Assembly: GCA_002104905.1 (NCBI GenBank)
Contig: MCFE01000787.1
Span: 1-36,177, forward strand
Source: Basidiobolus meristosporus CBS 931.73
Lineage: Eukaryota; Fungi; Basidiobolomycota
Direction of reading: 5' to 3'
Length of the DNA: 36,177 nucleotides
In this document: positions 141 through 31,580 of the stretch, one piece after another
Layout of the letters: every line of letters begins with the position of its first letter
How positions within the stretch are numbered: position 1 is the first letter of the stretch
Notes under the pieces: generated by a model
The model's input: only the letters and a program-made list of their open reading frames with translations
Databases searched by the model: none
Told to the model about the DNA's origin: nothing
Made by a program: the position numbers and the translations under genes

Positions 141-382
141 CCCTTTGAAAAATAATTTGGTCTTGCAGGTTGATCTGATCCAGATCAGCCATTAAGATCC
201 AGTTTAGAGACCATCATAACAACAGCAGCTTGGAATTAATGACCCTCCTAATGAACTTATGACAAGATCATGATGGTGTTTTGCTAATTTTACTACCAAA
301 TAAAGGGATGAAACTTGACAATATTTTTTGGTGCTGGGACAATATTTGCATGGTATTGTTGCAATCTTTCAGCACTCTATAA

Positions 383-3118
383 CTATTTTAAGTGGATCCA
401 GTTGGCCAGGATATCCAATTGCCTTATATGGCATGGAACTTGACGGTATTTTGACGGCCTCACCTCAAGATTCTGATGGCATTATATTGGCAGTATGATG
501 GCCTACTACTGGTTCTGTATAATGCTACCATACCAGTTTACCAAGTGGCATTTCCTTTTACTACCTCCCCTTGTGCAAATCATATATTCCACTGTAGAAT
601 CACCTTTCTTTATTTGCTTACCCACTACTACCTTGGGTATTCCACATACAGAACAAATCAAAAAAAACTATGGCCTCCTGCTTACTAACCTCTGCAAATG
701 TGCATACCTACTGCAATTGACATACTTCTATCACCTCAACTTTACGGCTTTTAGTGTGATACTTGCAAAGTTGCCATATACCTTGTACTGCTGGTTACAT
801 ATACATCTTGCAAGCATATGCTTGGTTGTTACCACTTCTGCCATGAATATGTCCTGAATATTGGCAAAGAACTTCTTGGTATTTAGCCAATATATTCCTT
901 CTCAGTGCTGGATTTTAGTACCCCTTATAGGTGCACTCTGGCATTTGTCTGTATGAATTTGGTATTGAATGGTGTCAAAGTTGGCTTGTGACCATGAGGT
1001 ATCTGGCATATCTTGGTGGAGTTTTCCTGATAAATATTAGTTGCTTGTTGCACCCAACCCAACTTTTCATTATATAACTGATTACCCACACATTGGGGCA
1101 GCTTATCTTCTTTATGCCATAGGCATAGGTGTCTCCATGTGCACATTTGTCCTCAGTATTTTCCAACTCTTTCTGGCTGTCCTCCATGTGCCAACTGATC
1201 ATACCCATGACGGACTTGAAGGTAATATTCTTGATGAGATTGGGATATGGTAGTACCTGCAACTTGACTTGTCTTCCTATCTCCCCACACATCCGCTCCA
1301 TAGGAAACTCCCAAAGGTGAAGCAAGGTCCAATATTCTCCACGCACCATGCAAGATGGAGTAGAGAATGGATACAGTAGTGGCAGAGATCTACGCATTCA
1401 GCTTTATGTTTGTAGTATAGCTGCTAAAATCCCATCACAAACTCCTCACACAACAGCTGTAGATGTGTCAAGTTGGGATTGGTGATCTGCTTCTGGGAAA
1501 ATATTCCTACAATGTCCCCATATGACTCCCAATGCTTTCAATGTACTCTTGGTAGCAACAGCATCAGAACACCACTTAAATAAATACATATCCAATTCAT
1601 CCAGACTTTGCATTTGTATTGTTGCATATGTGTACAAATACTAATTGGAGCCTGTGAGATGTACTTAGGGTAGCAGACACTCTGTCATATCTTGCCAATT
1701 CTTTCAAATTTCTCCAGTATCTTGAAGGGCTCATTTAGCTTAAAATGACCCATGTACAACTTGGTCATCAATATATGGATATTGTTGAAAAGCAAATGCA
1801 TTGCTCCCAGTGGAAAGCTTTTGCTCCTGCAGATACCCTCTATCTTAAGTATCTCCGGTTTCTGATTGATTCCATATTCCAGCCAATGGCTTATAGCTTG
1901 CCAACTTTGCTGCAATTGCATGCTTACTTCTGTATGTTCTCTCTGTGGAAAGATGATGTTCTTAATGCTAGTGTTTGGGTAATAGTAATGTGTGTGAGTT
2001 ATGGAGTAAATCCCCTGGATCTCTCACATTTGATAGCAATACCATCAATTGTGCCTGGAAAAACCTGCTATCTTGCTGATGGCTGGGGTATCTCTATAAA
2101 GTAGCCCTAGCTTCTTAGCTGTTTGTAATATTTGCCATCAAATATATTAGATGAGTTTGTGCTTGATTGATACTGAGTGCAGTACTGTATAGCTTTGCAA
2201 TATTTGTTGGACTGCATCAGCTCCCTCAGATAGGGTATGACCGGAAAATATCTGGAGTGTGAACAATGTTTTCCCTCAATGGTGGTGGATTCCTGACAGT
2301 TTGGACACATTGCAATGGCAGCATTTTTGGATGTGAATGCCATGCAACTGTTAGCACATGTTGGAATCAGGACAGTCTCTGGATCATATGTTGCCTGCTG
2401 CATGATGGTTGTCTACTTGTACCATGTACATGGTAAGTTGCATCCCAGTATGACTTTGGCAAGAAGTAGTAATAAATACTCAGAGCCCCCATTACTGATA
2501 TTAGTGCAACACACCACTTCTCTAGCCACAACATTACATCATTCACCAGTTGATGGATCACTGGGCTCACTTGGCTCCATAAAGCACCCTTGACATTTTT
2601 TTCAAGGAGTGTTGTCTCATTGCATACAGGGATTTGACCAGGCTTATACATGGAAGTATTGTTAGGGGAGATAGGCTCAAAATCTGTTAGTGAACCTTCT
2701 TTGTCAGAACTATCACTCTGTGTGCCATATTCAGAAGGCTGAGGTGGGCCTAAAGGTATCACAAACTCACCTGACTCAGTTTGTGCAAGGTGACAAAGAT
2801 GGCCAGGTGCTGATATAGAAGTATCAACTGGCTGGCAAGATGATGTTGGTACAGTAGCAACCAATGAATGGTCAAATATGACTTGGGGGGCAAAACACTT
2901 GCTATGATCCTTGTAATACTTCCTATGCTGTTTGCATGCTTCATGGATGAGAGGCTTGCCACAATAGCCACATGGTCTTTTTTCTCTTCTCTTATGGTGT
3001 TGAGTCAAAGTAGTCTTGTCCATGGGGCAAACAGTTTGACCTTCAATGACATAACACTATTATATCACTTTTTGGTCAATACTCATGTGAACTTAAGACA
3101 GACTAGTATTTGAGACAT
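383..3118 (-). pseudogene. CMC-1 transposase (Transposase_21/Tnp2-like), multiply disrupted, with an internal deletion
   Basis: Fragments RPCGYCGKPLIHEACKQH; YDPETVLIPTCANSCMAFT..CPNC; SFPLGAMHLLFNN; HLWEFPMERMCGEIG. Collinear with the CMC-2 and CMC-3 transposases. About 285 bp containing the ALDGF motif is missing near 2105. Start and end are approximate. Confidence 0.8.
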
Positions 3119-3295
3119 TGCACCTACATGAATATAAGATTCAATGATGACCAGCCATAGTAAGCATTATAAATAAATTTGTAGCACCACATACATATGT
3201 ATATGTAACACTATCCCTATGAGAAATTATTTAGATGATCCCATCAAAAGGCCATCACAAAGTTAATGTCCCATGACTAAGAGGTACTGATCTTG

Positions 3296-5611
3296 TCAGG
3301 ACACCATCCAGAGACCATTGAAAAATAATTGCACCCGGATTTCACAAAAAACCTTGTCAAAATTTTTCATCACAACAATGTATAAGTGGCTTTTGATTGG
3401 TTCCCTGCCAATTTGCTCACTTTCTGATCGCAGACACTCTATCATCTCCTTTGTTTGTGTGAATTGATTGGCTATTTCCTCTTCTTCACACTTCTTACTT
3501 CCTGACCCAACCATTTCACTTACTTTTCATGCATACCAATTGATTTATTTCCATTGAAACTTCAGTTGTATCTCAATTGCCAATTGTATTGACCTATACA
3601 AGTCTCTATACCCTACACTAGCTTTAAGCCCAACCCCACACTCAATAAGTAACTCCATTAAAATCCACCACTCAATAAGTATTTCTGCTGTAATGCTCTG
3701 GTTCCACAACTTTGGCAGGAACCCAACAGCTCTATGCCACTGTTCATTCACTGGTTCCCATGCATCCTGGTCTTCTGTTGGCACTGCAAGCTCTAGCTCC
3801 TCATCTGCCAGTCTTTGCAATAAATCCTTGCAATATTCTAGTCTGTCTTCTTAAGCACTGCTCTTGAAGAAGCTCTGTAACCTCTTGGTGTGCCTATTAA
3901 TGTTCCAAAATTCCACTGAAGGCATTGTGATAGTCTTCCAAGCTCTTGACATTGTAGCCTTATCTATCAGTGGGATCTCCACTCTGTCAACAATGGAGGC
4001 TGTGGAGGCTGTGGTAGATGAATTCCTTTTTCAGTAAACTCATTTACCTTGCTGGAGTGTAGCTCAACTGGCTGTGCTTCCAACTCTTATGAAAACAGCT
4101 GTTTTCTTGTTGGTAATTCTTCTTGGCTATGATGGGATTCAGTCTATTCCAGGCTTGCGGCATTAATTTGCAAGAACTGCAGTTTTTTTTGCTTGCCTCC
4201 CTGTCTCAGGCTTGGGGAGACATTTTTCCCTTTACCTTTACCTTTATCACTGCAAGGTCTTTCACTGCTACTTTGTCTGAGTGCATCTTGTAAAGAACTG
4301 CGTTTTCTCCTGGATAAATTCTGCTCTGACGCATCTGTTTTGGCCTGCTTGTCCCTTGCTGGCACTCTTATGGCAAGCTGACATTTCTTTTCAGCTTGTT
4401 TTGAGCTCTCAACCATAGTTGTGATGGGCTCCTGTAAAAGCAACTGGTCTTTATCACTGCCAGGTCCTTCACTGCTACTTTGACTTGGTGCTTCTTGAGT
4501 GGTACTACACTTTTTCCTTGATAAATGTTGTGCTGGTGTATCCATATCTGCCTGCTTGTCCCTAATTGGCACTCTTCCAGCTGCCTGACATCTCTTTGAT
4601 GCTTGTCTGGAGCTTTTGGCCCTGCTTGTAATGGGCTCTTGAGGAAGCCGCTGGTTTTTAGCCATGGCACCCTTGTTCTTCTGCCTTTGATAGTTTCTGC
4701 TATTCTTAAGATACTTTCTTAGCATACCAATGCTGGCCCAAAATCTGTTTGCCTGTTTGAATCCAGGATAATGCTCATGGAACAAGTCAAGTGCATTCTG
4801 CTTGGCCTTAGGTTTGTGATGGTCCCATGGTATGCCGGCCTTAAGGTAATGGCGTGCTAGACTTCTGACGGCCTCTTGTATATTGGCCCACTCTTCATTA
4901 TTGCACTCAACAGCTTACAGATCTTCAATGTCTTTTGATTTTGAGGCTTTGGTACAAACACCACATTGTCTCCCTTTCATGCTGTGATAGGTTTCTCTGT
5001 GGGCTTTATCTTTGGGTACTGTTGTTGTGCTTCAAAGACGGTACAGTGTTCCTCTGCTGTTACATTGGGAAATGGCTCAATTATTGGTGGTGACATTGAA
5101 CTGCTTGAGTTTCTTTTTTGCAGCAAAGATACTGCTTTCTCTACCTGGGATATTGATTGCTCTACATGTATTATCCGCTAATCCTGTTTCTGGACTACTT
5201 CCTGATATCTCTGGGCCATTGTATCTATCCTATCAGCCACTGCACCTAATTGCTTCATTAATGCTTTAGTATGAGCTGACAACATACTTGCTAATATGGA
5301 TGGTGGTGATTTTATCATGGCCACTTGCTGATCTTCAACTGAGGTTACTGCATTTGCTACATTCTCATCTGCCCTAGCATAATGGTCAGCTTGTGGCTCC
5401 ACAGTGGTTTGCAATTGCCAACTTGACTGAGAGCCTGAGGAGTCCGCATTATTACCTTCAATGGGCACACTGTCCACAGGGCCTTTTTTGGATATAGCCC
5501 TGCTTGTTGCACTGAATGTCAAACAAGCTGTTGTCCTACCATTCTTCTGTTGCCGTCAGCAGTGGGGTTTGGTTGAGAACCAGACAACTTTGCCTTATTT
5601 TCTGGTGGCAT
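3296..5611 (-). pseudogene. CMC-2 ORF2, uncharacterised accessory protein, decayed
   Basis: Successive minus-strand fragments (5178-5522, 4144-4785, 3545-3820, 3296-3514) are collinear with the plus-strand fragments of CMC-1 and CMC-3. They include the conserved block LDLFHEHYPGFKQANRFWASIGMLRKYLKNSRNY. The start ATG at 5611 is inferred from conservation of ATATATG in all three copies. Confidence 0.7.
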
Positions 5612-5738
5612 ATATATGGAAGTGAGTCAAACTAAAGGGGAAATAGTGCTACATATACGTGTGTATGTGGTGCCACAACTTTATTTATAATGCTTACTAT
5701 GGCTGGTCATCATTGAATCTTGCATTCCTGTAGGTGCA

Positions 5739-8700
5739 ATGTCTCAAATAGAAGACTGTCTTAAGTGCACATGAGTATTGGCCAGAAAGTGATATAATAG
5801 TGTTATGTTGTTGAAGGTCAAACTGTTTGCCCTATGGACAAGACTACTTTGACTCAACACCATAAGAGAAGGAAAAAAGACCATGTGGCTATTGTGGCAA
5901 GCCTCTCATCCATGAAGCATGCAAACAGCATAGGAAGTATTAGAAGGATCACAGCCAGTGTTTTGCCACCCAAGTCATATTTGACCATTCATTGGTCACT
6001 ACTGTACCAACATTATCTTGCTGGCCAGTTGATACTTCTATATCAGCACCTGGCCATCTTTGTCACCTTGCACAAACTGAGTCAGGTGAGTTTGTGATGC
6101 CTTTAGGCTCACCTCAGCCTTCTGAATATGGCATGTAGAGTGATAGCTCTGACAAAGAAGGTTCACTAATGGATTTTGAGCCTATCTCCCATAACAACAG
6201 TACCACATATGAGCCTGGTCAATTCCCTAGATGCAATGAAACAACACCTGTTGAAACAAATGCCAAGGATACTTTATGGTGCCAAGTGAGCCCAGTAATC
6301 CATCCACTGGTGAATGATGTAATGTTGTGGCTAGAGATGTGGTGTGTTTCCACTAATATCAGTAATGGGGGCTTGGAGGATTTATTACTACTTCTTGCCA
6401 AAATCATACCTGGAAGCAACTTACCATGCACATGAAACAAGTGAACAACCATCATGCGGCTGGTAATATATATCCAGAGACTGTCCTGATTCCAGTATGT
6501 GTTAACAGTTGCATGGCATTCACATCCAAAAATGCTACCATTGCAATGTGTCCAAATTGACAGGAATCCACCACCATTGAGGGAAAACATTGCTCACACT
6601 CTGGATACATTGCGGTCATGCCCTGTCTGAGAAAGCTGATGCAGTCCACAAATATTGCAAAGCTATACAGTACCGCACTCAGTATCAATCAAGCGCAAAC
6701 GTATCTTATATATTTGATGGCAAACATCACAAACAGCTAAGAAGCAAGGGATACTTGAAGGTATGTATGACCATGCCTTTGCTTTAGCACTTGATGGATT
6801 CTCATTAAACAAGTACTCTACAAGCAAATCCTGCTGGCTACTGATTCTCATCAATCTGAATCTGCCGCACATCTTGCAGTATCAGAGCAATAATCTGATG
6901 GTAGTCTCACTGGTATCTGGGCCTAAATCACTGTCCAACCTGGATAGCTACCTGTGTCCATTGCTGGATGAATTTTGTATGCTTTCCAGTGGGATAATGG
7001 TAAATAGCTGTCATGTAAAAGCACATATTATTATCTGCCTTGGAGATACCCCAGCCATCAGCAAGATAGCAGGTTTTTCCAGGCACAATTGATGGTAATG
7101 CTATCAAATGTGTGAGATCCAGGGGATTTACTCCATAACTCACACACATTATTATTACCCAAACACCAGCATTAAGAACATCATCTTTCCACAGAGAGAA
7201 CATACAGAAGTAAGCATGCAATTGCAGCAAAGTTGGCAAGCTATAAGCCATTGGCTGGAATATGGAATCAACCAGAAACTGGAGATACTTGAGATAGAGG
7301 GTATCTGCAGGAGCAAAAGCTTTCCACTGGGAGCAATGCATTTGCTTTTCAACAATATCCATATATTGATGACCAAGTTGTACATGGGGCATTTCAAGCT
7401 AAATGAGCCCTTTGAGATACCGGAGAACTTTGAAAATATTGGCAAGATATTACAGAGTATCTAAGATATTACAGAGTATCTGCTACCCTAAGTACTTCTC
7501 ATGGGCTCCAATTAATATTCATACGCATATGCTTGAATACAAATGCAAAGACTGGATGATCTGCATATGTATTTATTCAAGTGGTGTTCTAAAGCCATTC
7601 CTACCAAGAGTATATTGGAAGCATTGGGAGTCATATGTGGGCATTGTAGGAATATTTATTCAGAAATGGATCACCAATGCCAACTTGACGCATCTACAGC
7701 TGTTGTGTGAGGAGTTTGTGATGGGATCTGAGCGGCTATACTACAAACATAAAGCTGAATGTGCATTTCTCTGCCGCTACTGTATCCATTCTCTACTCCA
7801 TCTTGCATGGTGTGTGGAGAATATTGGGCCTTGCTTCACCTTTTGGGAGTTTCCTATGGAGCAGATGTGTGGGGAGATAGGAAGACAAGTCAAGTTGCAT
7901 GTACTACCATATCCCAATCTCATCAGGAATATTACCTTCAAGTCTGTCATGGATGTGATGAGTTGGCACATGGAGGACAGCCAGAAAGAGTTGGAAAATG
8001 CTGAGGACAAATGTGCACATGGAGACACCTATGCCTATGGCATTAAGAAGCTAAGCAGCCCCAATGCATGGGTAATCAGTTAAGTATTGCAAAGTTGGGT
8101 TGGGTACAACAAGCAACTCACTTTTATCAGGAAAACTCCACCAAAATATGCCGGATTTCTTGTGGTCACAAGCCAACTTTCACACCATTCAATATGGAAT
8201 TCACACAAACAAAAGCCAGAGCGCACCTATAAGGGGGACTAGAATCCAGCAGTGAGAAGGAATATATTGGCTAAATACTAAGAAGTTCTTTGCCAATATT
8301 CAGGAGGTATTCATGGCAGAAGTGGCAACAATCAAGCATATGTTTGCAAGATGTATATGCTACCAGCAGAACAAGGTATATGGCAACTTTGCAAGTATCA
8401 CACTAAAAAGCCGTAAAGTTGAGGTGATAGAAGTATGTCAGTTGTGGCAGGTGTGCAAGTTTGTAGAGGTTAGTAAGCAGGAGGCCATAGTTTTTTTTGA
8501 ATCAAACTATTTGTGGAATACCCAAGGTAGTAGTAGGTAAGCAAATAAAGAAAGGTTATTATACAGTGGAATATATCAATTGCACAACGGGAGGTAGAAA
8601 AGGGAAATACTATTTGGTAAATTGGTATGGTAGCATTATACAGAACCAGCAGCAGGCTGTCATACTGCCAAGAAAAAGCCATCAGAGTGTTGCTGTGAGG

Positions 8701-8775
8701 CCATCAAAATACCCCCAAGTTTCTTGCCATATAAGGTAATTGGAAGTCCAGGCAAATTCTATCCACTTAAAATAG
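5739..8775 (+). pseudogene. CMC-2 transposase (Transposase_21/Tnp2-like), the most complete copy
   Basis: Motifs FALALDGFSL..SCWLLILINLNLP..LVSGPKSLSNLDSYLCPLLDEF..CLGDTPAISKIAGF; FPLGAMHLLFNN; CRYCIHSLLHLAWCVENIGPCFTFWEFPMEQMCGEIG. These are characteristic of fungal CACTA/EnSpm-like transposases. Several stops and frameshifts. Ends approximate. Confidence 0.85.
7444..7481 (+). repeat. Perfect 19-bp tandem duplication (AAGATATTACAGAGTATCT x2) that frameshifts the CMC-2 transposase
   Basis: Units at 7444-7462 and 7463-7481. The homologous sites in CMC-1 (~1680-1700) and CMC-3 (~24065-24085) have a single unit. Confidence 0.9.
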
Positions 8776-9645
8776 TAATAGAGCGCTAAAAGACCGCAAA
8801 AATACCATGCAAATATTGTCACAGAACCAATCAAAAATTGTCAAGTTTTCTTCCTTTTTTTGGCTGTAAAATTTGCAAAACACCATCATGATCTTGTTGT
8901 AAGATTGTCAGGAGGGTCACTAATTGCAAGCTGCTGTTATTATGACGGTCTCTAAACGGGATCTTGACGGATGATCCAGATTGGATCCACCCACAGGACT
9001 AAATTATTGTTCATAAGGTATTTCCCCTTTGGTTTGACTCACTTCCATATATATGCCACCAAAAAATAAAGCAAAGCTGTCTGGTTCTCAACCAAATGCC
9101 ACCGCTGACAGCAACAAAGAATGGTCAGACAACAGCTTGCTTTGACATTCAGTCCAGCAAGTGGGGCTACATCCAAAAAAGTCCCTGTGGACAGTTAGCC
9201 CACTGAAGGTAATAATGCGGGCTCCTCAGGCTCTCAGTCAAGTTGGCAATTGCAAACCACTGTGGAGCCACAAGCTGACCATTATGCTAGGGCAGATGAG
9301 AATGTAGCAAATGCAGTAACCTCAGTTGAAGATCAGTAAGTGGCCATGATAAAATCACCCCCACCCATATTAGCAGGTATGTTGTCAGCTCATACCAAAG
9401 CATTAATGAAGCAATTAGGTGCAGTGGCTGATAGGATAGATGCAATGGCCTAGAGAAATCAGGAAATTGGCCAGAAACAGGATGAGTGGATAATATGTGT
9501 AGAGCAATCAATATCCCAGGTAGAGAAAGCAGTATCTTTGCTGCAAAGAAGGCACTTGAGCAGCTCAATGTCACCACCAATAATTGAGCCATTTCCCAAT
9601 GTAACAGTAGTGGAACACTGTACAGTCTGTGAAGCACAACAACAG

Positions 9646-10014
9646 TGAGAGTACTAAATGCAGTACCCACTCTTTGACCAAGAATTCTCCCCAGAGTCCT
9701 ACCCAAAGTCCACCAGTATCCTCCCTATGATTCCCCCATGCACCCTCCCTCCTATCCCTACACTTATCTAGTTAGTACACTTACCATCACAGGAAGGTGT
9801 TCACACCCCTATTTTATAACACATTGACTATTATCTAAGCCCCCCCAAGTGATATATATATGTACCCAATTGAACCAAGACAAGGGGATTGGACAAAATA
9901 AACACAAGTCTTTATTACCTAGCTACCTTCTATTGGAAGCTACTCTGAACCAAGTGGTACTAACTTGACCTACAAGCTCTCCCACTCACCAAGTACAGTC
10001 AGTAATAACCCACA
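9646..10014 (+). repeat. Gypsy-A 5' LTR (369 bp)
   Basis: TGAGAGTACTAAATGCAG...AATAACCCACA. Direct repeat of 16822-17191, with about 15 substitutions and 1 indel by manual count (~96% identity). Contains GATATATATA and AATAAA. Confidence 0.95.
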
Positions 10015-10018
10015 TATT

Positions 10019-10030
10019 TGGTGCCATCTC
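10019..10030 (+). other. Primer-binding site of gypsy-A, tRNA-His-like
   Basis: TGGTGCCATCTC begins 5 nt after the 5' LTR end. It is complementary to the 3' end ...GAGATGGCA-CCA of fungal (S. cerevisiae) tRNA-His(GUG) as I recall that sequence. Confidence 0.6.
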
Positions 10031-10055
10031 TGTGGAAATAAGCGCAAGTGAGGTG

Positions 10056-10900
10056 ATGACTACTACAATCAAACTAAAAACATACAAGGGAAAGAGAGAG
10101 AAAGCCCTTGAGTGGTTTGATAAGTTTGAGAAAGTTGCGGTTGATGCAGGATGGGACAACAATAAGAAAGTAAGGGAGTTTGCAAGACATATGGAAGGGT
10201 CAGCATGGTGATGGCATTATGGGTTGGAAGAGGCAGTTAAAGACAACTGGGATGCACTAGAAGAAGCCTACAAGACACGCTTTCTATATGCAGAAGGATA
10301 CCACTACAAAGCCCTTCTACTGTCCTCACGGAAGAAAAGCAGTGAGAGCTATGAAGCCTACACTGAACTGTTTCTCCAACAAGTTTGATGTCTCCCAAAG
10401 GATAAAATTGCCAAACAACAGCTCATGAGGTATAACATCATGGGCTTAGACAACAAAATAAGACAAAGGGCGTCCAAAGAACAACAGGGATGTAAAACGC
10501 TGCAAGAGTTGGTCAAACAAGTGCAAGGGGTCATCTTGCTATGGGGGCTACCCTCTAGTGATACAAATAATTGAAGGACAGGGATCCCCTGTAAGAAAGG
10601 AAAATTGCCTCCCCAAAAGACCGTGAGTTAGAAGAATTACGGCAAAAGGTCCAAGAACTCTCAATCAATAATGTCCAAGAAGTCCTCAAAGAAAGTGATA
10701 AACTCTGGGAAGCTGTTGTAGATCTAAAGACCCAGGTACAAGCCCTGACCCAACAGATGGAAGAACCGTGACAGCAGTATCTGTGTTATGTGTGTGGAGA
10801 AGTAGGTCACCGGGCCCACAAATGTGAAAAACAGTATGGACAAGAAGCCGTACCGGACACAAAAGAGAAGAAGGCATTGAAAGACAGAGTCCCTTGCCAG
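10056..10900 (+). pseudogene. Gypsy-A gag with CCHC zinc knuckle
   Basis: MTTTIKLKTYKGKREKALEWFDKFEKVAVDAGWD...NWDALEEAYKTRFL. Knuckle CYVCGEVGHRAHKC at ~10784-10825. Several in-frame stops. End approximate. Confidence 0.8.
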
Positions 10901-11269
10901 GAGGCCAACAGGACTCAGTCAATCTAAGCCCTCTGGTCAGGACAGTCAAAGTGTGGAAGAAGAAGCGTCAACATGATGCTTCTAGAGAGGAGACAAAGGA
11001 ACCAGTAGTAAAGGTTCTGTCAAAAGGAAAGAATGCGGAATTAAGTGAAGAAGTACGGAATGAGCCTTGGGAAGAAGTGTTTAAACAAACAAAGAACGCT
11101 AGCACGTCTTTCCATGGCCTATTCCCCATAATGAAGGTACTAGGGCAAACCAAGGCAACCCTCCCAATAACCAATTTACTAGGACTTGCCCTGGCTCTAG
11201 TTAAGGAACTGATAGAGGTATTGAAGGAGATAACAACCCTTCATGTTTACCAAATGGTCCTGCAAAGAC

Positions 11270-16776: not shown

Positions 16777-16821
16777 TCAAAAGAACTTGGAGGACAAAGC
16801 TCCCTCTTAACCCCCAGGATA

Positions 16822-17191
16822 TGTGAGTACTAAATGCAGTACCCACTCTTTGCCCAAGAGTTCTCCCCAGAGTCCTACCCAAAGTCCCCCAGTATCCTCC
16901 CTATGATTCCCCCACGCGCCCTCACTCCTATCCCTACCTTTATCTAGTTAGAACACTTACCATAACAGGAAGGTGTTCACACCCCTATTTTGTAACACAT
17001 TGACTATTATCTACGCCCCCCCCAAGTGATATATATATGTACCCAATTGAACCAAGACAAGGGGATTGGACAAAATAAACACAAGTCTTTATTACCTTGC
17101 TACCTTCTATTGGAAGCTACTCTGAACCAAGTGGTACTGACTTGACCTACAAGCTCTCCCACTCACCAAGTACAGTCAGTAATAACCCACA
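16822..17191 (+). repeat. Gypsy-A 3' LTR (370 bp)
   Basis: TGTGAGTACTAAATGCAG...AATAACCCACA followed by the TSD AACAG. Confidence 0.95.
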
Positions 17192-18966: not shown

Positions 18967-20865
18967 TCCTATAACTGATCTATTTGTCTCTTTATCTCTT
19001 CCAACTTCAATAGACTCATTCTGGAAGGTGGCTTGCTCACTGGAGGGCTGCTTCATATGTCAATGGCATGATCCACATGTCTGACTGGTGGTAGGCTGAC
19101 AGGTTCATGTGGAAACACATCTGAATATTCCTTCAAAAGAATCTGGACCTCCTGGGGCCCTGGAGTAGAGGAATTCACCAGTAATACTGCCATGAGGGAC
19201 ATCTGGGTACCTTTTCCAGGTGTCTTACGGAACTGTGTCTTGCTATGTTCACTTGTTTCACAGACACTGGAATTTACGAAGTTGAGATCCAGTCTGGCAG
19301 GTAATAGCTTATAGGTCTTGTTGTCCTTCTGGATCTGAGTAGCATGGATTCTCCAGCTGATGGATGGATTACAGGAAAATAGCCAGGTTCTCATAAGTAC
19401 AAGGTCAAACTTGCAGTTCCCATATATAATGGCCTGTTGGTCTTCTTCATAATCATAGATCTTCATTCTTGCGGGCTGAGTAATTGGTTGATTATGTGTG
19501 AGTTCCTGACAGCTGTTGAGACTGTAGTTGATGTGGTGGGTTCCATGTTAATTCTAGCTTTCAAGGCAAATTGCTCTGACATGTACTCATATGATGATCC
19601 TGAGTCAATCATGATCTTGGCAGGTACTCTGTTACAACATGTGTGCAATGTTTGGGGCTGTCTGGACAACTTGGGGAATTTTCATGTTCTGGGTACCTGG
19701 TATTTTGGTGAAAATATTCCAAGTAAATCCCAACAAGGAATTTGGTCAGTATTCTCTAGGATATGAAGGTAATGATCTAAGTGACTAAGTTAGGTGAATA
19801 TTTGGGTCAAAATACAAATTCTTACAACATGCTTACTCCATTCAGGTATAGCAGCTTCCCTGAGTTTGAGGTCAGCTGGCATAGGTATTGTTCTGTCATA
19901 TGGGAGGTTAGCTCTGAAGCTTCTTCAAGTTCATTCTTCATGTTAATGTGCTCAAGGGCTTTGACACAGTTGATGATTCTTGATGACTGATGTTCATTTC
20001 TTCTCTGCAGGCAGTACTCTGCAATATGTCCCTGCTGGTGGCAAATAAAGCAATGTCCTTTCTCCTTACCTTCTTCTGAGGTGGGATTCTTCTGCACAGC
20101 ATCTATTTCCATTAGCACTGCTTCTGAATGTCTTCTTTCATAGTGATTATAGCTTCTCTGATCAGTCATTGTAGGCTTCCCAACTCCAAGAATAGCTGAT
20201 TTATAGTCAGTGGCTGTCTTGATGGCTCTTCAATAGTCTGAGGTTTTCAGTAAATCATTTCCTTGAGAGTTCTATTTTTCAGCACATCAATAAAGTATTC
20301 AACTTGATGCAGGGGGTCCAGTCATGGCATCCACAATGGACATGAAGGTAATATTCATTCTAAAATTGAGTAAGGAGAGTACTTGAACTTGACTATTTCT
20401 TCCTATCTGCCTCTACATCTGCTCCACAGAGTGTTCCCAAAATTTGAGACAAGGTCCATTACTCTTCACTCTTCAAGTAAGAGGTACTAGAGAATAGATA
20501 TAACAGCAGTTAAGACCAATTAGCTCTGCTATGTGCTTGGAGCACTGATGATTAAATTCTGTTACAAGCTCTGGACATCAAAGCTGTAGATGCATTGAAT
20601 TAGCAATGGTAATCTGCCTCCAGATAAATGATTCCACAATATCAACCAATGATCCCCAATGTATCATAGGGGAAAACATCTTTAGATGGCAACTTCTACA
20701 AATAAGCATGCAATGCATATAATCCTTGTATTGGTGTTGACAGATATGCTTTTAGAGATTGATCAGAGTTGGTGAGAAGTAAATTGGATTATAGGAGCAA
20801 TGAAACATCATGTTAGCTTTGATATTGCTCTTGCATCTCAATAGAGGCAAATAGATTGAAAAATC
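18967..20865 (-). mobile_element. Gypsy-B: old, heavily decayed Ty3/gypsy fragment (gag, protease, start of RT)
   Basis: Gag with the AVLMEIDAV motif and knuckle CFICHQQGHIAEYC. Protease AKIMIDSGSS. EYSDVFPHEP..LPP.RHVDHAIDI. Continues at 140 beyond CMC-1. Its 5' LTR was not confidently located. Confidence 0.85.
19642..19826. mobile_element. 185-bp TG...CA element (mini solo-LTR-like) inserted in the gypsy-B protease
   Basis: TGTGCAATG...TTCTTACA flanked by a 5-bp direct repeat ACATG (19637-19641 and 19827-19831). It separates LLYLNGV from CNRVPAKIMIDSG. A second copy lies at 28554-28737. Confidence 0.7.
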
Positions 20866-21589
20866 CCCTATCAAAAGCAATTTGGTACTGCAGGTAGATC
20901 CAATTTGGATCAGCTGTCAGGATCCCGCTAAGAGTTAGTCATAACAACAGCAGCTTGAAACTACTGACTCTCCTCACAGTCTTATGATGGGATTGTGATG
21001 GCATTTTGATGATTTGACTGCCAAATAAAGTAAAAAACATAATGGTGTTTTGGAAGACTTTGGGCAAGAATTGCCAATTATATCAATTTCTTAATGCACT
21101 CTACATTTACTTGAGCAGATCTAACTGGTCTATACATCTAATTGCTGTATATTGTAAGAAATGTGATGGTATTCTGATGGCCTCATTGCAAACCCCTGCT
21201 GGTATTACAATGGCAGTACAGCAATCTATAATTGGTTTGTGTAATGCTACTCTACCAAGTTACCAAGTTGTATTTTCTTTTTCTACTTCCCCTTGCACTA
21301 TTCACATATTCAACTCTACAATTACCACTGTTTATTCTCTTACCCACTACTGCCTTGGGCTTTCCACATAGAGTTCAAATCAAGAAAAACAATGGCCCCC
21401 TGCTTATTGAACTCTACATACATTCACATCTGCTGTAACTGACACACTTCTGTCATATCAACTTTATGAGTTTCTCAGTGTGAAACTTGTAAGGTAGCCT
21501 TATACCTTTTATTGCTAGTAGAATAAACATCTAGCAAACATTTGCTTGGTTGCTGCCACTTTTGCAACAAACACCTCTTGAATAACTTC

Positions 21590-21956
21590 TGTTACAAGTG
21601 TTGGAATACAAGTTATAGAGGAATAAGGAGTTTAGCTACTATTGTACTCACCAAAAGCTGACTGAATTTTTTTTGAGGTTAAAGCAGATGCTTATATACA
21701 TTTTGCCAGATCAATTGTTGACTATTTGTATTTCCTAATGTAGGTTGTGGCTGATGCATTATATAGTTGCATCATTATCACCCACTTTGATCCTACTTGA
21801 TATATCTATTTCTGTCCAATAAGGATCTTCTGAATAATCTGCTGACTAGTACTACTGATTTGATAGACAATACTGATATATTGATAGGCCAGGCATAAAG
21901 CTATTGATTTGACTAAAACTGATCATACTTGAACATTCAAGCAGTGTATCATAACA
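21590..21956 (-). repeat. Putative 3' LTR of gypsy-C (367 bp)
   Basis: TG...CA ends with TGTTA/TAACA inverted termini, an adjacent PPT-like tract, and an exact break in CMC-3 homology at 21590. There is no partner LTR in the window to confirm it. Confidence 0.6.
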
Positions 21957-23951
21957 TTCTTCCTTACTAAAGTTAAGAGGGTTCTGCTGATTTACTTTTC
22001 TTGTTACACCAATATCTTTATGGTTCAGTATTGTCAGAAAGTCTTGAAAGCATGAGTCTGTCTCTATGAACTAAATATTGCCAGATTTTCCCTGGTTAGT
22101 TCACTAGCTGGCAAGTTGCAAATGGACATTCTCTGATGATCTTGAATGGTCCTGTCAATTGTAGCTCAAGCTTCTTCTGAGTGTAGTTTCTCAGCAATAG
22201 AAAGTTCAAGCTGTCAATGCTTCTAGTGATATAGTCTTATCAAATCTCTGCTTCATTTTTTTGGCACTTTGAAATACTTTGGCCTGTGCCTCTTGATGTC
22301 TTTGTTCCAGTTGCTGGTGTCTACTTGGTTGACAATGCTCATCCTCTAAAGCATCTGTCTGCTTTGGTTGTGTGAGATCTCCTGGAATCCTTGCTTCACA
22401 TCCATGCACAATGTAAAGTGCAATTTTGAGGGGTGTTTTGCACTCTAACTATGCAGGCAAAAGTGCTTGGTCTATTTACTAATCCCATCTACTGACAGCT
22501 CCATTTGTATACTTGGTCAGCATTTTTTCAAATAATCAATTAAGCTACTCAGTAACCCAATTAGTTCAAGGGTGATATTCCAAGGTTTCAAGTGCTTGAT
22601 CTGCTGCATTTCCAGGTAAGCTTCCAATGTCTTTGCCATAAAGTTTGCTCCTCTATTAGATAAACTCTCTACAGGGCATCTGAACTTCATAAGGATCTTG
22701 TGGTAGATGAAACTTGCAATCTGTTTCTCACTGGCTTCAGGTACAGCTTTTGCCACGGCCCATTTAGTGGTATGGTCAATTGCTACTAGGATCCAATGTT
22801 TGCATTTCCTGGTGGTTGGTAGCTTTCCTATAAAGTCAATTCCCCATCTCTCATATGGTCTTACAAGCTGCAAGGGAAAGAGTTAAGCAGATCTCTGTAG
22901 TTGGCCTTGGTTGATTTGGCAAATTGGGCATATTTTGATTAGCTTTACAATACCTTGTTTCATTCTGGGCTGTCAAGCTGTAGCTTTTACAAGGCTTTGG
23001 GTTCCTTCAGTTCCAAGATGTACTTATTAATTGTGTAGCTTGTGTTCTATATCCAGGCATGCAACATCAGGGCAATAGGCAATAGGCCTTCCATCAACAA
23101 TTTGGTAGAGTGCCTCATCCTGTAATACAAATTTGTTGGCTTCATCCAAAAAGATTTTCTTGGTATCTTTGTCCACCTCATTAGGAATGGCTTGGTCCTC
23201 CAAGTATGTTGGTAATAAGCTAGGCCAATCTTATTTATGCACTAAGCTGAGTTGTGCAACCTGTTCTAGTCTTGATAGGGCATCAGCAACCATCTTGTTT
23301 TTCCTAGGGCTGCAGACAAGCTCCAAATCAAATTGCTGAATGTACTTGCTCCATCTCAGCATTTTTCTGGATAGTACCTTCTGAGTATATATACCTGAGT
23401 GAGGTGTGGTCAGTCTTCACAGTGCATTTGACTCCTTCAATATAGCATCTCTAGGTCCCAAAGCAGTATAGTATGGCAAGCATCTCCTTCTGATGCACTG
23501 GATAGTTTTGTTCTGCTGAGTTCAGTTTCTTGGACTCAAATCAACTGGGTAGTCCTTTCCCTCATGTTCTTGGCTGAGTACTCCACTGATTGCATAGTCT
23601 GAAGTATTTGTGCACAGAGTAAACTCTTTTCTGAAGTCTGCAACTCTTAAGCTTGGCCAATTAGAAAATTCATTCTTGAGCATCTGAAAGGCAGTCTCAC
23701 AGGCTATGTTCCACTTCAAGGTATTTTCTCTCTTGAGGATAACATTTAAAGGGACTGCAATATGTGCAAAGGACTTGCAAATCTCCAATAATAGGAAGCC
23801 ATTCCAAAGATTGGTCTGAGTTGTAATATGCTATGAGACTTCTTTGGATTCTTGATGACTTCAACCTTTGTGGGTCTAAGGTCACTTTTAATGTCAAGGG
23901 GAGTAGAGCCACAAGCTGGTTAAAAAAATAATTTTGTATACAACCAGCAAC
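21590..23951 (-). mobile_element. Gypsy-C: 5'-truncated Ty3/gypsy element (RT end, RNase H, integrase, 3' LTR)
   Basis: DPTKVEVIK..GMASYY; TLCTNTSDYAISGVLSQ; RPYERWGIDFIGKLP..VAIDHTTKWAVAKA..SNRGANF. Putative 3' LTR 21956-21590 (TGTTATG...CTTGTAACA), preceded by the purine tract AGTAAGGAAGAA (21968-21957). Confidence 0.85.
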
Positions 23952-26014
23952 TTAGGGTTAGGGTTGACTAAATACATTTGCAGTTCATCCATTCCTTGCA
24001 TTTGTATTGTTGCATATGCATATCAATACTGATTGAAACCTGTGAGAAGTACTCTGGGCAGTGGATTATCTGTAACATCCTGCCAATTTCTTTAAATTTC
24101 ACTGGTATCTCAAAGGGCACATTCAGCTTGAAATGCCCATGTACAACTAGATCATCAGTATAGGAATATTGCTGAAAAGCAAATGCATTGCTCCCAGTAG
24201 AGAGCTTTTGCTCCAATAGATACCCTCTATCCTTAGTATCTCTGGTTTCCTATTGATTTCATATTCTGGCCAATGGCTTATAGCTTGCAAACTTCACTGC
24301 AATTGCATGTTGACTTCTGTAGGTTTTCTTGGTTGGAAGATGATTTTCTTGGTGTTGGTGTTTGGATAATAATATTTTGTGTGAGTATTTCAGTAACTCC
24401 CCTTGATCTCATGCATTTGACAGTAATACCATCAATATTGACAAGAAAAGTTGGCTATGTTGCATATGGCTGGGGTAATGTGTATGAGTTATGGAGGAAG
24501 TCCCCTGAATCTCACACACTTGAAAGCAATGTCATCCATTGTGCTCAGAGAAACCTGCTATCTTGCTGATGGTTGGGGTATTACTAATGCGGATATACTA
24601 TGCACTTAGATCTGGCAGCCTTGTAGTAGTCTCCAGTTGAAAGCATACAAGATTTATCTAGCAATGGATACAGGTAGCTGTCCAGGTTGGATGGTGATCA
24701 AGGCCCAGCTGCCTGTGAGACTACCACCAGATATTTGTTCTGCTACTGTACAATAGGTGAAAGATACAGGATGATGGGAATCAGCAGTCAGCAGGATTTA
24801 CTGGGGGATTCTTGTTTAATGAGAATCCATTGAGTGCCAAGGCAAAGGCATGGTCATACATACCTTCAAAGTAGCTCTTGCATCACAGTTGTTCAAAATG
24901 GTTACAATAAATATATTGGAAATGCTTAGGCTTGATCAGTACTGAGTGCAATACTTTATATCTTCACAATATTTGTTGGACTGCATGAGCTTCTTTAGAT
25001 GGGAAATTACTGGAATATATCTGGAGTGTGATCAATGTGTTCCTCCTATGGTGTTAAATTCCTGACAAGTTGGACACCATGTAATGGTGGCATTGTCTGA
25101 TGAGAAGCCATGCAGCTTTTAACATATGCAGGTATCAGGATGGTCTCTGGGTCATATGTTACCAGCCATATGACAGTAGTCCACTAGTACCACATACATG
25201 GAAAATTACATCCTGAAATGATTTTGGCACAAGGTAGTAGTACATCCTCAGAGCCCCAGTTTCTGATATTTGTGGAAACATGCCACTCCTCTAGCTACTA
25301 CATTGCATTATTCACCAGTAGATGGTTTGCTGGGCTCACTTAGCTCCATAAAGTATCCTTGGCATTTCTTTCTATAGTTGTTGTTGTACCAAATAGTTGG
25401 CTTATGGTAGGCACATGCAGGGTACTCTTGTTTGGGGTGATAGGCTCACAATCCATCAGTGGGCCTTGTTCTTTAGAGCAATCACTCTGCATACCATATT
25501 CAGAAGGCTGCAGCAAGCCCAATGGAGTCACTAACTCACCTGACTTAGTTTGCTCAAGATGACAAGTACAGCTAGGTGCTGTTATAGAAATATTAAGTGA
25601 CTGGAACAAGATTTTTGGTACAGTAGTGACTGATAAATGGTCAAATATGACTTGTATGGCAAAACACTGTTCATGATCCTTTGAATACATCCTATGCCCT
25701 CTGCATGCTTCATGGCTGGCAGGCTTGTTACAATAGCCACATGGTCTGTTTTCTCTTCTCTTACGGTGTTGAATCAAAGTAGTCTTCTTCATGGGGCAAA
25801 AAGTTTGACCCCCAGCAACCTAATGCTTTTATATGACTTTTTTGTCAGTACTCATGTGAATTTGACACAGTCTTGTATTGGAGACATTGCACTTACATTT
25901 GCTTAAGAATCAATGACAGTCCACCACACTATACATTCTAAATAAAGTTGTGTCACCCTATACTCACATATAGGTAGAACTTTTTCCACTTTGGTTTAAC
26001 TCACTGCCATATAT

Positions 26015-28316
26015 ATGCTGTCAAAAATTAAACAAGGCTGTCTGGCTACCAACCAAACCTCACTGTCAACAGCTGCAGAAGAACAGTTGGACAAGCTTGC
26101 TTTGATATTCAGTGCAACAAGCAGGGATACATCCAAAGATGCTGTGTTGGCAGTTTGCCCACTGAAGGTAATAATGGGGACTTGACAGGCTCTGAGTCAA
26201 GTAGGCAATTGAGAACCTCTGTGGAGCCACAAGCTGACTGTTATGCTCAGGCAGATGCAAATGTAGCAAATGCAGTACTCTCAGTTAAAGACCAGCAAGT
26301 GGCCATCATAACATCACCACCACCCATATTAGCAACTATGCTGTCAGCTCATACCAAAGCATTAATGAATCAGTTAGGTGTAGTGGCTGATAGGATAGAT
26401 GTAATGGCCCAGAGAAATCAGGAAATAGTCAAGAAACAGGGTGAGTGCATAATATGTGTAGAGCAATCAATATCCCAGGTAGAGAAAGCAGTATTGTTAC
26501 TCCAGAGATGGAACTCAAGTAACCTAGTGTCACAGCCAAGAATTGAGCTATTTCCTGATGTAACAGCAGAGGAACACCATACAGTCCTTGAAGCACAACA
26601 ACAGTGCCCAATGATAAAGCCCACAGTAAACCTAGCACAGCATGGGAGGGAGACAATGTGGTGTTTATACCAAAGCCTAAAAATCAAAAGACATTGAAGA
26701 TTTGTGAAGCCATTGAGTGCAATAATGAAGAGTGGCCTAATATTCAAGAGGCTGCCCAAAGTCTAGCACACCATCACTTTAAGGCCAGCATACCATGGGA
26801 CCATCAGGAACTCAAGGCCAAGCAGAATGCACTTGACTTGTTCTATGAGCATTATCCTGGATTCAAACAGGCAAACAGATTTTGGGCCAACATTGGTATG
26901 TTAAGAAAGTATCTTAAGAATTGCAGAAACTATCAAAGGCAGAAGAACAAGGGTGCCATGGCTAAAAACCAGCGGCTTCCTCAAGAGCCCATTACAAGCA
27001 GGGCCAAAAGCTCCAGACAAGCATCAAAGAGATGTCAGGCAGCTGGAAGAGTGCTAATTAGGGACAAGCAGGCAGACATGAATGCACCAGCACAACATTT
27101 ATCAAGGAAAAAGTTTTGCACTACGCAAGAGGCACTGAGTCAAAGCAGCTGTGAAGGACCTGGCAGTGATAAAAACCAGCAGCTTTTATGAGGGCCCAAT
27201 GCAACTACAGTTGAGAGCTCAGAACAAGCAGAAAAGAAACGTCAGGTTGCCAGAAGAGTGCCAGCAAGGGACAAGCAGGCCACAACAGATGCCTCAGAGC
27301 AGAATATATCAAGGGGAAAATATAACTCATTGCAAGAAGTACTCAGACAAAGTAACAGTGAAAGACCTGGCAGTGATAATGGAAAAGATAAAGGGGAAAA
27401 TGTCTACCTAAGGCTGAGACAGGGAGGCATGCAAAAGACGCTGCAGTTCTTGCCAATTAATGCCGCAAGCCTGGAACAGATTGAATCCCATCATAGCCAA
27501 GAAGAATTACCAACAAGAAAACAGCTGTTTTCACAAGTGTTGGAAGTGCAGCCAGTTGGGCTACACTCCAGCAAGGTAGATGAGTTTGCAGAAAAAGGCA
27601 ATTTGTCTACCACAGCCTCCACATTCTCCATTGTTGACAGAGTGGAGACCCCACTGACAGACAAGGCTACAGCATCAAGAGCTCAAAAGACTATCACAAT
27701 GCCTTCAGTGTAATTTTGGAATATCAATAGGCACACCAAGAGGTTGCAGCACTTCTTCAAGAGCAGTGCTCAAGAATACACACTTGAATATTGCAAGGAT
27801 TTATTGCAAAGACTGGCAGATGAGGTGCCAGATCTTGCAGTGCCAGCTGAAGACCAGGACATGTGGGAACCAGTGAATGTACAGTGGCATAGAGCTGTTG
27901 GGTTCCCGCTAAAGTTGTGGAACCAGATTGTTACAGCAGAAATATTTATTGAATGGTGGATTTTAATGGAGTTACTTGTTGAATGTGGGGTTGGGCTGAA
28001 TGTTAGTGTAGCATATAGGGACTTGTACAAGTCAATACAATTGGCAATTGAGGTACAAGGAAATAAATCAATTTGTACACATGAAAAGTAAGAGAAATGA
28101 TTGAGTCAGGGAGTAAGAAGTGTGAAAAAGAGGTAATAGCCAATCAATGCACACAAACATAGGAGGTGATAGAGTGTCCAGGATCAGAAAGTGAGCAAAT
28201 TGGCAGGGAGCCAATCAAAAGCAACTTATACCTTGTTGTGATGAAAAAATTTGACCAAGTTTTTTGTGAAATCTAGGGTGCAATTATTCTTCAACAGTCT
28301 CTGGACAGTGTCCTGA
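26015..28316 (+). pseudogene. CMC-3 ORF2 (not interrupted by insertions; frameshifted)
   Basis: ORF-track pieces 26155-26697, 26604-27191, 27258-27713 and 27744-28091 are collinear with ORF2 of CMC-1 and CMC-2. Confidence 0.72.
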
Positions 28317-28553
28317 CAGGATCATTACCTCTTAGTCATGGGACTCTAACTTTGTAATGGCCTTTTGACAGGATTATTACAATAATTTCCCTTAGGGAGA
28401 AATACCCTGCTAGTGGGTGAGATGGAATCTGTGGGGATACCAACTACTGATAAGGATGTGATAGTATGTAAATGTAAAAGTAGTATTTATACCTTTTCAG
28501 AGTCTTTGTCAAAAAAATGATGTAGAATATGCTTGAAAGACCTCAAGAACATA

Positions 28554-28737
28554 TGTGCAAAGATTGAGGTTGTTTGGACAACTTTGTGAAACCCCATGCT
28601 CTGGGTATTGGATATTTTGGTGGAAATATTCCAAGTAAACCCAACAAGGAATCTGGTCAGAATTCTCCAAGATTGGTAGGTAATGAACTAAGTGACTAAG
28701 TTAGGGAAATACTTGGGTGTAATTACAAGTTCTTACA
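28554..28737. repeat. Second copy of the 185-bp TG...CA element
   Basis: TGTGCAAAG...TTCTTACA aligns end to end with 19642-19826 (shared core AAATATTCCAAGTAAA..CAACAAGGAA..CTAAGTGACTAAGTTAGG). No TSD here (ACATA vs ACTCC). Confidence 0.75.
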
Positions 28738-29521
28738 ACTCCCAGAACATGGAGTTACTCATAGTAGTCCAAGCAGCCCCAAGCTTTGGACATGTGTCCT
28801 TGGGACCTTCCTAAACATATTCTTTGTGTATGTGTTGCCAAGACCATGTAAAAGTATAAAAACTACACTTACATTCAATAAATGATTAAGTGGAAACCCC
28901 ATAATCCACTTGTTCTCCCAAACTCTTACAAATGGCAAAGTAAATGTCAAGATCTAGGTATAATACAAAATGTACAACGTAGTGTACATCTGTGTATTCA
29001 ATCTACCAATGGTGGCATTTGTAATAGTGTAGTATATTAAGCTGATAGAAGTCAAGTAGAGAGAACTCTCCAGAGATTGGGTTGATGGCATTTCCAGAGT
29101 TAAACAGATCGTTGTAGAAGGGCCAGCAATACAAATCAAGATTTAGATAGCCTTTCATTTTAAGTTTTATAAGATGGGCGAGAATAACATGCAGATATCA
29201 ACCAAATTTCTCATATGTGATCATTTCAAACAAGCTAATCAATCAGCTATCTCTACTGGAATGCGTAAATTTGGATGGTATAGTTATTATCATTGCGTAA
29301 TAATTGGCAATATTACTAATGAATCGATTTTGGGCAAATGGATGGGATTTCAGGATGAGAACTATGTTCATAAATGGCAATTAGAGTGGGTTTTTTCATC
29401 GGCTTATTTCTAAGCAGGCTGGGCAGGAATGGAAACCGGCTCACACGTGATCTGAGGATTTACCTGCGGAATGGGAAAATTACTCTACTTTAACCTGGTC
29501 CGTAAAGGAGAAAACTTCAAC

Positions 29522-31052: not shown

Positions 31053-31580
31053 GCAACATCTAATTCATGCATTGTATTTAGACTCATCTCATCAAATCCC
31101 TACAATAAACCAATGTGACCATTTGGCCCATTTTCTAGAAGTTACCATTCCCTCTGGGATAATGCCTCATGACGTTACGTTGGTAACTTGCCTGATCACA
31201 TGATTCGTCTCACCACGGCAAAGATTTTTCATCTTCCAACAGCCGATGTGAGAGTGTGATGATGGATTCGGCCATTCACCCACTGCCAATCCCCATTGCC
31301 ATTCACCACCCCTAGCATCGACACCATTCTGATCATGTAAAATCATCTATTCCGGATTCCGTTGACCAAATTGATGAAGTTATATGTATATATATACTCC
31401 ACTGACGTTGACACTGTTTCCTCACAAACCTGAATCCAGTAGAGTTTTAGTAAGCAAGCGCGAGTCCGAAAACTCCCCCCTTCCCTTCTACAGTTACTCT
31501 ATATTTATAGAAGGCACGGGAATATAGACACGCTACTGGTTACTTTTTCGTATTCTTAAGAAGTCATCAAGGCAAGCTTC

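Follow-up and report, generated by a model that had tools for sequence, protein, structure and literature searches.

TpCpG hypermutation of repeats, a cytosine-to-thymine conversion at TCG/CGA, has been reported for every member of the Pucciniomycotina examined so far, but for neither the Agaricomycotina nor the Ustilaginomycotina (Horns et al. 2012, PMC3318451); there, as in the case described below, the mechanism and the dependence on repeats are unproven (PMC3318451). Repeat-induced point mutation (RIP) has been suggested for the Entomophthorales from a CpA-type composite index only (PMC10515909), an index that is negative in the transposon DNA analyzed here, and the text of a 2025 kingdom-wide RIP survey makes no mention of CpG, TCG, or Pucciniomycotina (PMC12543289). 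Our literature search, directed at early-diverging fungi and at Basidiobolus, found no report of a TCG-type pattern outside the Pucciniomycotina, but most subscription journals lay outside its coverage, so novelty is unproven. The data set is the whole of scaffold MCFE01000787.1 (36,177 bp; assembly GCA_002104905.1), here called the window, from Basidiobolus meristosporus CBS 931.73. The left-hand 29 kb of the window is a nested stack of transposons, and the right-hand 7 kb carries MAS2, PIM1, and a truncated TauD gene. We found that the transposon stack bears the same signature as the TpCpG hypermutation of the Pucciniomycotina, in a distant lineage, with deeper CpG decay and a different listed set of DNA methyltransferases (DNMTs). 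This footprint had previously been described only in rust and anther-smut fungi, and its presence here means that context-specific mutation of repeats occurs in lineages far outside the Dikarya. An earlier note on this DNA had thought such a system notable if the host were an early-diverging fungus; the host belongs to the Basidiobolomycota, outside the Dikarya (NCBI taxonomy).

We counted CpG sites and their contexts on both strands of positions 1 to 28900 (the block), with expectations taken from base composition. The observed/expected ratio (O/E) of CpG was 0.12, corresponding to a loss of ~88% of CpG sites, and the deepest loss was that of TCG/CGA, with 7 occurrences against ~727 expected (O/E, 0.01; ~99% lost). 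The remaining contexts had O/E values of 0.13 (ACG/CGT), 0.20 (CCG/CGG), and 0.17 (GCG/CGC). The TCG bias of the CpG depletion is real and far beyond chance: only 6 of the 146 CpGs in the block had a 5′ T or a 3′ A (T/A-flanked CpGs), versus 46% expected from the block's own dinucleotide frequencies (binomial p = 1.5e-30). The earlier note had described a loss that spares CCG/CGG and nearly eliminates TCG/CGA. The second half of this description stands, with a loss of ~100-fold, but the first does not, as all CpG contexts have been lost 5- to 8-fold; CCG/CGG is itself 5-fold depleted, and among the unflanked CpGs it is mildly over-represented (90 of 140 versus 54% expected).

The repeats in the block are three copies of a CMC/EnSpm-like DNA transposon (A, B, and C, with B nested in A) and one Ty3/gypsy element (gypsy-A), and the context counts that the earlier note had given for them held almost exactly when we recounted. 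Positions 141 to 9018 contain 43 CpGs, 30 of them CCG/CGG and one TCG (3428-3430); gypsy-A (9646-17191) contains 86, of which four are T/A-flanked (12240, 13693, 16100-16103, which reads TCGA, and 16181); and copy C (20865-28398, the CMC-3 of the note) contains 10, none of them T/A-flanked. Expressed as O/E, unflanked CpGs stood at 0.47 in gypsy-A, 0.26 in copy B, 0.11 in copy A, and 0.066 in copy C, and T/A-flanked CpGs stood at 0.02 to 0.04 in gypsy-A, 0.01 in copy B, and 0 in both copy A and copy C. Among the CMC copies, CpG depletion increases with copy age (B < A < C).

The context effect is confined to the base directly 5′ of the cytosine. At position −1 of the CpGs in the block, T accounted for 2% of bases versus 29% in the background, and positions −2 to −4 were at background. 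A 5′ T had no effect when the cytosine was not followed by G, in that TCA, TCC, and TCT were not depleted (TCA O/E, 1.17) and polarized C-to-T rates at TCC (0.024) and TCT (0.029) resembled those of other non-CpG contexts. APOBEC3-type enzymes target TC, which resembles the 5′ T preference seen here and might suggest an APOBEC-like single-strand DNA cytidine deaminase editing retroelement cDNA or exposed DNA. We regard such an editor as highly improbable, however, because a 3′ G is required, because the DNA transposons were hit as much as the retroelement, and because both strands were hit equally, whereas cDNA editing would bias the strand. Two trivial sources of the pattern were also rejected, namely, avoidance of TCGA as a restriction site, since TCGB and VCGA were as depleted as TCGA, and an assembly artifact, since the depletion is both context specific and domain specific.

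Standard thresholds for RIP are TpA/ApT > 0.89, (CpA+TpG)/(ApC+GpT) < 1.03, and a composite index > 0. The block was negative by all of these classical indices (TpA/ApT, 0.80; substrate index, 1.52; composite index, −0.71), and we rejected classical RIP on these grounds. In contrast, the Microbotryum-type normalized index (t/n − 1, as defined by Duhamel et al. 2023, PMC10502011), which is above 0 where TCG/CGA is depleted and TTG/CAA is in excess, reached ~12 for the block, compared with −0.17 for the genic DNA of the window. The standard CpA-based RIP indices are entirely blind to the TCG process.

At the right-hand edge of the transposon domain (1-29100; 41% GC; CpG O/E, 0.12; TCG/CGA O/E, 0.01), composition switches between positions 28978 and 29110, ~420 bp upstream of the MAS2 start. 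The first TCG lies at 29109-29111, and in the genic end (29100-36177) CpG O/E was 0.88 and TCG/CGA O/E was 1.09, in agreement with the earlier report that TCG returns from about 29110 and is abundant in the genes. TCG depletion was also looked for in single-copy intergenic DNA, and in the 1877 bp of single-copy noncoding DNA beside the genes (43% GC; CpG O/E, 0.81) there was none, TCG/CGA being the commonest CpG context (51 counts). In this scaffold, and for this small sample, the depletion is restricted to the transposon domain, and the adjacent single-copy noncoding DNA is unaffected; the C-to-T conversion favoring TCG that the earlier note had proposed is thus supported, and here it is strongly TCG biased and confined to the transposon block. 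Since the final 360 bp of this domain (28740-29100) is equally depleted in CpG yet matches no repeat in the window, "domain restricted" is a safer description than "repeat restricted." The statement that "this genome has" such a system is an extrapolation from one 36-kb scaffold. In the genic part, we also observed that TCGA was over-represented (45 versus 27.5 expected).

Comparison of the sister copies provided a means to ask whether TCG is lost faster than other CpGs. At 91 aligned sites among copies A, B, and C, one copy has TG where another has CA, which implies an ancestral CpG that mutated on different strands; the observation of such sites in the earlier note was thus real, and its example, TTTGATGGG/TTTGACAGG, is located at the 3′ end of the CMC element. 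CpG-derived pairs between A and B comprised 3 CG/CG, 30 CG versus a mutated dinucleotide, and 40 TG/CA. These counts fit roughly 70 to 110 CpGs at the time when A and B split, with a loss of ~76 to 87% of them from each copy since. Given that non-CpG transitions between A and B amounted to only ~2% per site per copy, the mutation rate of CpG cytosines is tens of times that of other sites. Among the CpGs present at the split, CG-retaining pairs (CG in at least one copy) numbered 28 versus 21 TG/CA pairs when the sites were unflanked and 0 versus 10 when they were T/A-flanked (Fisher p = 0.0009), which favors a faster loss after the duplication at T/A-flanked sites. From surviving fractions, we estimated an effective ratio of TCG to non-TCG loss rates of ~5 to 14, which is a long-term figure. 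At ancestral CpGs that are TG/CA discordant between A and B, we noticed 0 cases at TCGB and 8 at VCGA, even though these are mirror-image classes. The A-C and B-C comparisons were balanced, and the imbalance may reflect chance or a strand effect.

We consider it fairly probable that these data reflect a decay of CpG across the transposon domain that is probably methylation dependent and that carries an extra 5- to 14-fold boost at TCG, as in the Pucciniomycotina. The 29-kb block would be a chromatin domain where C is replaced by T at individual CpG sites, on either strand, tens of times faster than background transitions accumulate; CpG methylation with subsequent deamination is expected to leave such a footprint. 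A T adjoining the cytosine on its 5′ side would speed this loss ~5- to 14-fold, so that T/A-flanked CpGs would nearly disappear from every repeat family, with genes and single-copy noncoding DNA left untouched. The context bias would come from the cytosine-acting enzyme, putatively a methyltransferase of the DNMT1 family with a preference for TCG in either its methylating or its deaminating activity. Methylation itself, the enzyme responsible, and the stage at which the T exerts its effect are all inferred; methylation and deamination provide the simplest reading because the loss affects all CpG contexts on either strand, the domain ends sharply near a promoter, the 5′ T gives an approximately 10-fold boost, and TC not followed by G is unaffected.

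Candidate enzymes are on record in the source data of PMC10538959, where DNMT1 (ORX99839), two Dim2-like proteins (ORX98566 and ORX84408), UHRF1 (ORX90637), and two HELLS proteins are given for B. meristosporus and where no DNMT3, DNMT5, or DNMT4/RID was detected. In Zymoseptoria tritici, Dim2 drives mitotic CA-to-TA mutation in methylated repeats, although CG is more methylated (bioRxiv 10.1101/2020.03.27.012203), so the context mutated by an enzyme of the DNMT1 family can differ from the context that it methylates. A bolder proposal, which we put forward as a speculation with little chance of being right, is that a TCG-directed, repeat-confined DNMT1-family mutator is ancient and shared by Basidiobolus and the Pucciniomycotina or has arisen twice with the same trinucleotide specificity. 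Shared ancestry would mean that the mutator predates the Dikarya and that RIP-type defense is far older than the RID system of the Ascomycota, and a double origin would indicate a structural constraint in DNMT1-family enzymes.

The strands on which the mutations fell bear on a different explanation, a true RIP-like defense in which duplicates would be sensed through their homology, perhaps in the stages leading to meiosis or zygospore formation, and would suffer bursts of C-to-T mutation at TCG, methyl-CpG decay accounting for the rest. Such a defense would be consistent with the restriction of the signature to repeats in the window and its presence in every repeat family, and a loss as large as ~99% would fit an active mutator. 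Furthermore, the same trinucleotide pattern has been called RIP-like in the Pucciniomycotina (PMC3318451), a RIP-type index signal has been reported for some Entomophthorales (PMC10515909), and Dim2-type enzymes are able to drive repeat mutation (bioRxiv 10.1101/2020.03.27.012203). However, mutated strands were balanced in copy A (TG:CA, 31:31) and copy B (22:26) and were unclustered along each (runs test p = 0.81 and 0.78, respectively), which argues for many independent single-site events and not the one-strand bursts of RIP. In addition, the two long terminal repeats (LTRs) of gypsy-A, a 370-bp duplicate with 95.7% identity, show no TCG-type differences, the CpG-poor stretch at 28740-29100 lacks repeat homology in the window, and no RID/DNMT4 is listed for the species (PMC10538959). 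Homology dependence is not readable from one scaffold, and we regard a defense of this kind as unlikely. The term "RIP-like" used in the earlier note is apt as regards confinement to the repeat block but is unproven in the strict, homology-dependent sense, the strand being random (p about 0.8) and the RIP indices negative.

The same site-by-site, strand-random decay in all CpG contexts would also fit uniform CpG methylation combined with a bias in repair, such that the T:G mismatch left by deamination of 5-methylcytosine (5mC) is poorly repaired by a TDG/MBD4-type glycosylase when the mismatched T follows another T. This reading would likewise account for an effect limited to the immediate 5′ neighbor. 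Nevertheless, we found no precedent for a 10-fold effect, fungal or other, in the literature searched, and TCG is still the most frequent CpG context in the neighboring genes, which means that the defect would have to matter only where DNA is methylated. Given that limitation to methylated DNA, the TCG richness of the adjacent genes means that sequence alone cannot separate a repair bias from a bias of the methyltransferase itself; we judge a repair bias to be quite unlikely.

Several points weigh against methylation-dependent decay with a TCG boost, beginning with the evidence base, a single scaffold with three copies of one transposon family and one LTR pair. The 5- to 14-fold ratio assumes an equal starting O/E for all contexts, and the table in PMC10538959 gives no 5mC reference for B. 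meristosporus. In a three-copy polarized test restricted to sites with conserved flanks, 0 of 42 flanked and 12 of 117 unflanked copy-sites were still CG, a weak difference in an underpowered test (p = 0.037), and the corresponding strand-direction test, also underpowered, was null (6 to 6). A strand-direction bias of 23 to 13 was discarded as an artifact, since it had been scored with flanks that may themselves have mutated in the copy concerned and vanished with conserved flanks; when the ancestral trinucleotides had to be identical, hardly any CpG sites were available for polarization, as the sites are saturated. On the expectation in the earlier note of a higher polarized C-to-T rate at TCG, the evidence from three copies is modest: the pairwise comparison favors it (p = 0.0009), the three-way test is weak, and the strand direction is null. 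Lastly, the gypsy-A LTRs differ at 16 positions, of which two are CpG transitions, neither T/A-flanked, and they contain 0 and 3 CpGs, implying that gypsy-A was already CpG poor at insertion and that much of the depletion was inherited from source copies exposed to the same mutational pressure. We accordingly dropped the assumption that the unflanked CpGs of gypsy-A started at an O/E of ~1. As a separate observation, the spectrum of LTR differences is odd for a domain otherwise dominated by CpG transitions: transitions account for only 6 of the 16, and A↔C transversions for another 6.

The state of the LTRs raises the question of whether the families simply arrived TCG poor, through a past process or in another host, with nothing context specific happening in place. 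The CpG poverty of the LTRs at insertion, the lack of TCG events in them since, and the null three-way strand-direction test would all be expected under such an inherited composition. The signature, however, is common to two unrelated families (CMC/EnSpm-like and Ty3/gypsy) and to the unclassified stretches at 18967-20864 and 28399-29100; none of the T/A-flanked CpGs that A and B had when they split has survived in either copy, unlike the unflanked ones (p = 0.0009 as above); and the depletion deepens with copy age, from B to A to C. We consider inherited composition to be very unlikely, and it is, like the APOBEC-like editor, largely contradicted by the data.

The labels that the earlier note gave to the repeats and genes (CMC, gypsy, MAS2, and PIM1) hold, and the repeats form the following stack. 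The CMC/EnSpm-like family, with three copies in the scaffold, has terminal inverted repeats beginning CCCTATGAAAAAT. Copy A lies on the plus strand in three segments, the first of which (141-3214) has a terminal inverted repeat starting CCCT(A/T)TGAAAAAT. It is interrupted by copy B (3215-9018, minus strand), a full-length element that shares 90% identity with A and shows the least decay of the CMC copies (CpG O/E, 0.135). The second segment of A (9019-9645) separates copy B from gypsy-A, an LTR retrotransposon on the plus strand (9646-17191) that inserted into copy A, and the third (17192-18966) ends with the 3′ terminal inverted repeat. The LTRs of gypsy-A (9646-10014 and 16822-17191) each have the form TG...CA, the insertion is flanked by a 5-bp target-site duplication, AACAG (9641-9645 and 17192-17196), and the element retains pieces of protease, RNase H, and integrase. 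An old, repeat-derived spacer follows (18967-20864; CpG O/E, 0.04), in which a single CGA survives (19277) and part of a CMC element is recognizable (20322-20661). Copy C (20865-28398, plus strand), which is 74 to 75% identical to A and B, is the oldest copy, and the domain ends in a CpG-poor tail (28399-29100) that has a single CpG at 28978 and in which 28548-28739 repeats 19636-19828.

The broken open reading frames (ORFs) of the transposons were used as queries in separate pieces, without crossing stops. The copy B ORF at 7403-8083 had 1081 relatives in a large representative search, the long ones carrying Transposase_21 (tnp2) and DUF4218, and had no Pfam match in the family scan; these relatives place it with the tnp2/DUF4218 (CMC/EnSpm-like) transposases. 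Its best match, with 45% identity, was a 1621-bp metagenome contig (ENA ERZ14207112 NODE_5325), and none of the ten matches that we looked up was from Basidiobolus. That contig has a CpG O/E of 0.26, yet 4 of its 17 CpGs are T/A-flanked, so that it lacks the Basidiobolus pattern. In our searches for extra copies, the gypsy RNase H ORF had only two matches by word search, both distant, the copy A ORF at 2367-3023 had none, and metagenome scans by protein or by a 30-mer conserved in A, B, and C likewise gave no match. Each CMC copy also contains a 207-bp tandem duplication, about 70 to 73% identical (4242-4660, 17517-17932, and 26963-27380), within a long, broken ORF on the plus strand of the element (26155-28091 in copy C, for example) that has no Pfam match and possibly encodes a second, repeat-containing transposon protein. 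A segment of ~2.4 kb in copy C (21584-23969) is missing from A and B and includes an rve integrase-core piece on the minus strand (22517-22873); it is the remnant of an older retroelement inserted in C.

The genes that served as the control compartment all lie on the plus strand and are a MAS2-type M16 peptidase gene with normal CpG and TCG content (29522-31052), the PIM1/Lon protease gene (31581-34944), and a TauD-family gene truncated by the scaffold end (35331-36177). We queried PIM1 by its largest single exon (ORF at 31581-34427), which matched the protein of B. meristosporus CBS 931.73 at NCBI with 100% identity, with Basidiobolus ranarum next at 92%. B. ranarum (JASJQH010000093.1, 1-17397) has the order MAS2-PIM1-TauD as well; its syntenic contig starts 1.8 kb upstream of MAS2, contains genes only, and is uninformative on repeats. 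The Lon-gene loci of three Glomeromycotina contained no CpG-poor repeat block. In Geosiphon pyriformis (JAAOMT010000200.1, 1-6000), a CpG O/E of about 0.4 went together with retention of T/A-flanked CpGs (39 of 60), showing that CpG poverty without TCG exclusion is possible in another non-Dikarya fungus.

The Basidiobolus block provides an even stronger footprint of this kind in a culturable, non-Dikarya fungus and so a second system in which to ask whether the T acts at methylation, deamination, or repair. It also narrows the candidate enzymes, since with no RID or DNMT5 listed, DNMT1 and two Dim2-like proteins are left. For annotation, CpG/TCG density delimits the Basidiobolus transposon compartment, here to within about 150 bp.

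How, then, does the block compare with described systems? As in the methyl-CpG decay of vertebrates and plants, CpG becomes TpG or CpA on either strand, site by site, in what would be methylated compartments, and gene-proximal DNA, unmethylated in those organisms, keeps its CpGs. In vertebrate and plant genomes, flank effects on CpG decay are small (less than about 2-fold), whereas in Basidiobolus a 5′ T shifts CpG survival by one to two orders of magnitude. The RIP of Neurospora and other Pezizomycotina likewise concentrates C-to-T changes in repeats and leaves transposons inactivated and rich in stops, but it targets CpA, producing an excess of TpA that the TpA/ApT and composite values of the block do not show; it needs RID, which is not listed for B. 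meristosporus; and it leaves one-strand runs in each copy, of which copies A and B have none. The Dim2 mutator of Z. tritici (Moller et al.) shares with the Basidiobolus pattern a context-specific C-to-T change in repeats and is linked to the DNMT1 family, with meiosis unnecessary; its CA context has been shown experimentally, whereas the TCG context in Basidiobolus is read from DNA composition and alignment.

The closest likeness is to the TpCpG hypermutation of Microbotryum, Puccinia, Melampsora, and Rhodotorula. Several differences are apparent. The Basidiobolus host is a phylogenetically far, non-Dikarya fungus; its general CpG loss is much deeper, with non-TCG CpGs depleted 5- to 8-fold; it is listed with DNMT1 and two Dim2-like proteins and without DNMT5, compared with a single Masc2-type Dnmt1 reported for the Pucciniomycotina (Amselem et al. 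2015, PMC4352252); and the evidence comes from composition and a three-copy comparison, not from multicopy alignments. In both cases, however, the target is TCG/CGA and the change is C to T in repeats, TC without a following G is not elevated, CpGs without a 5′ T are also mutated above background, no RID homologue is found, and the normalized index is strongly positive, reaching about 12 in the Basidiobolus block.

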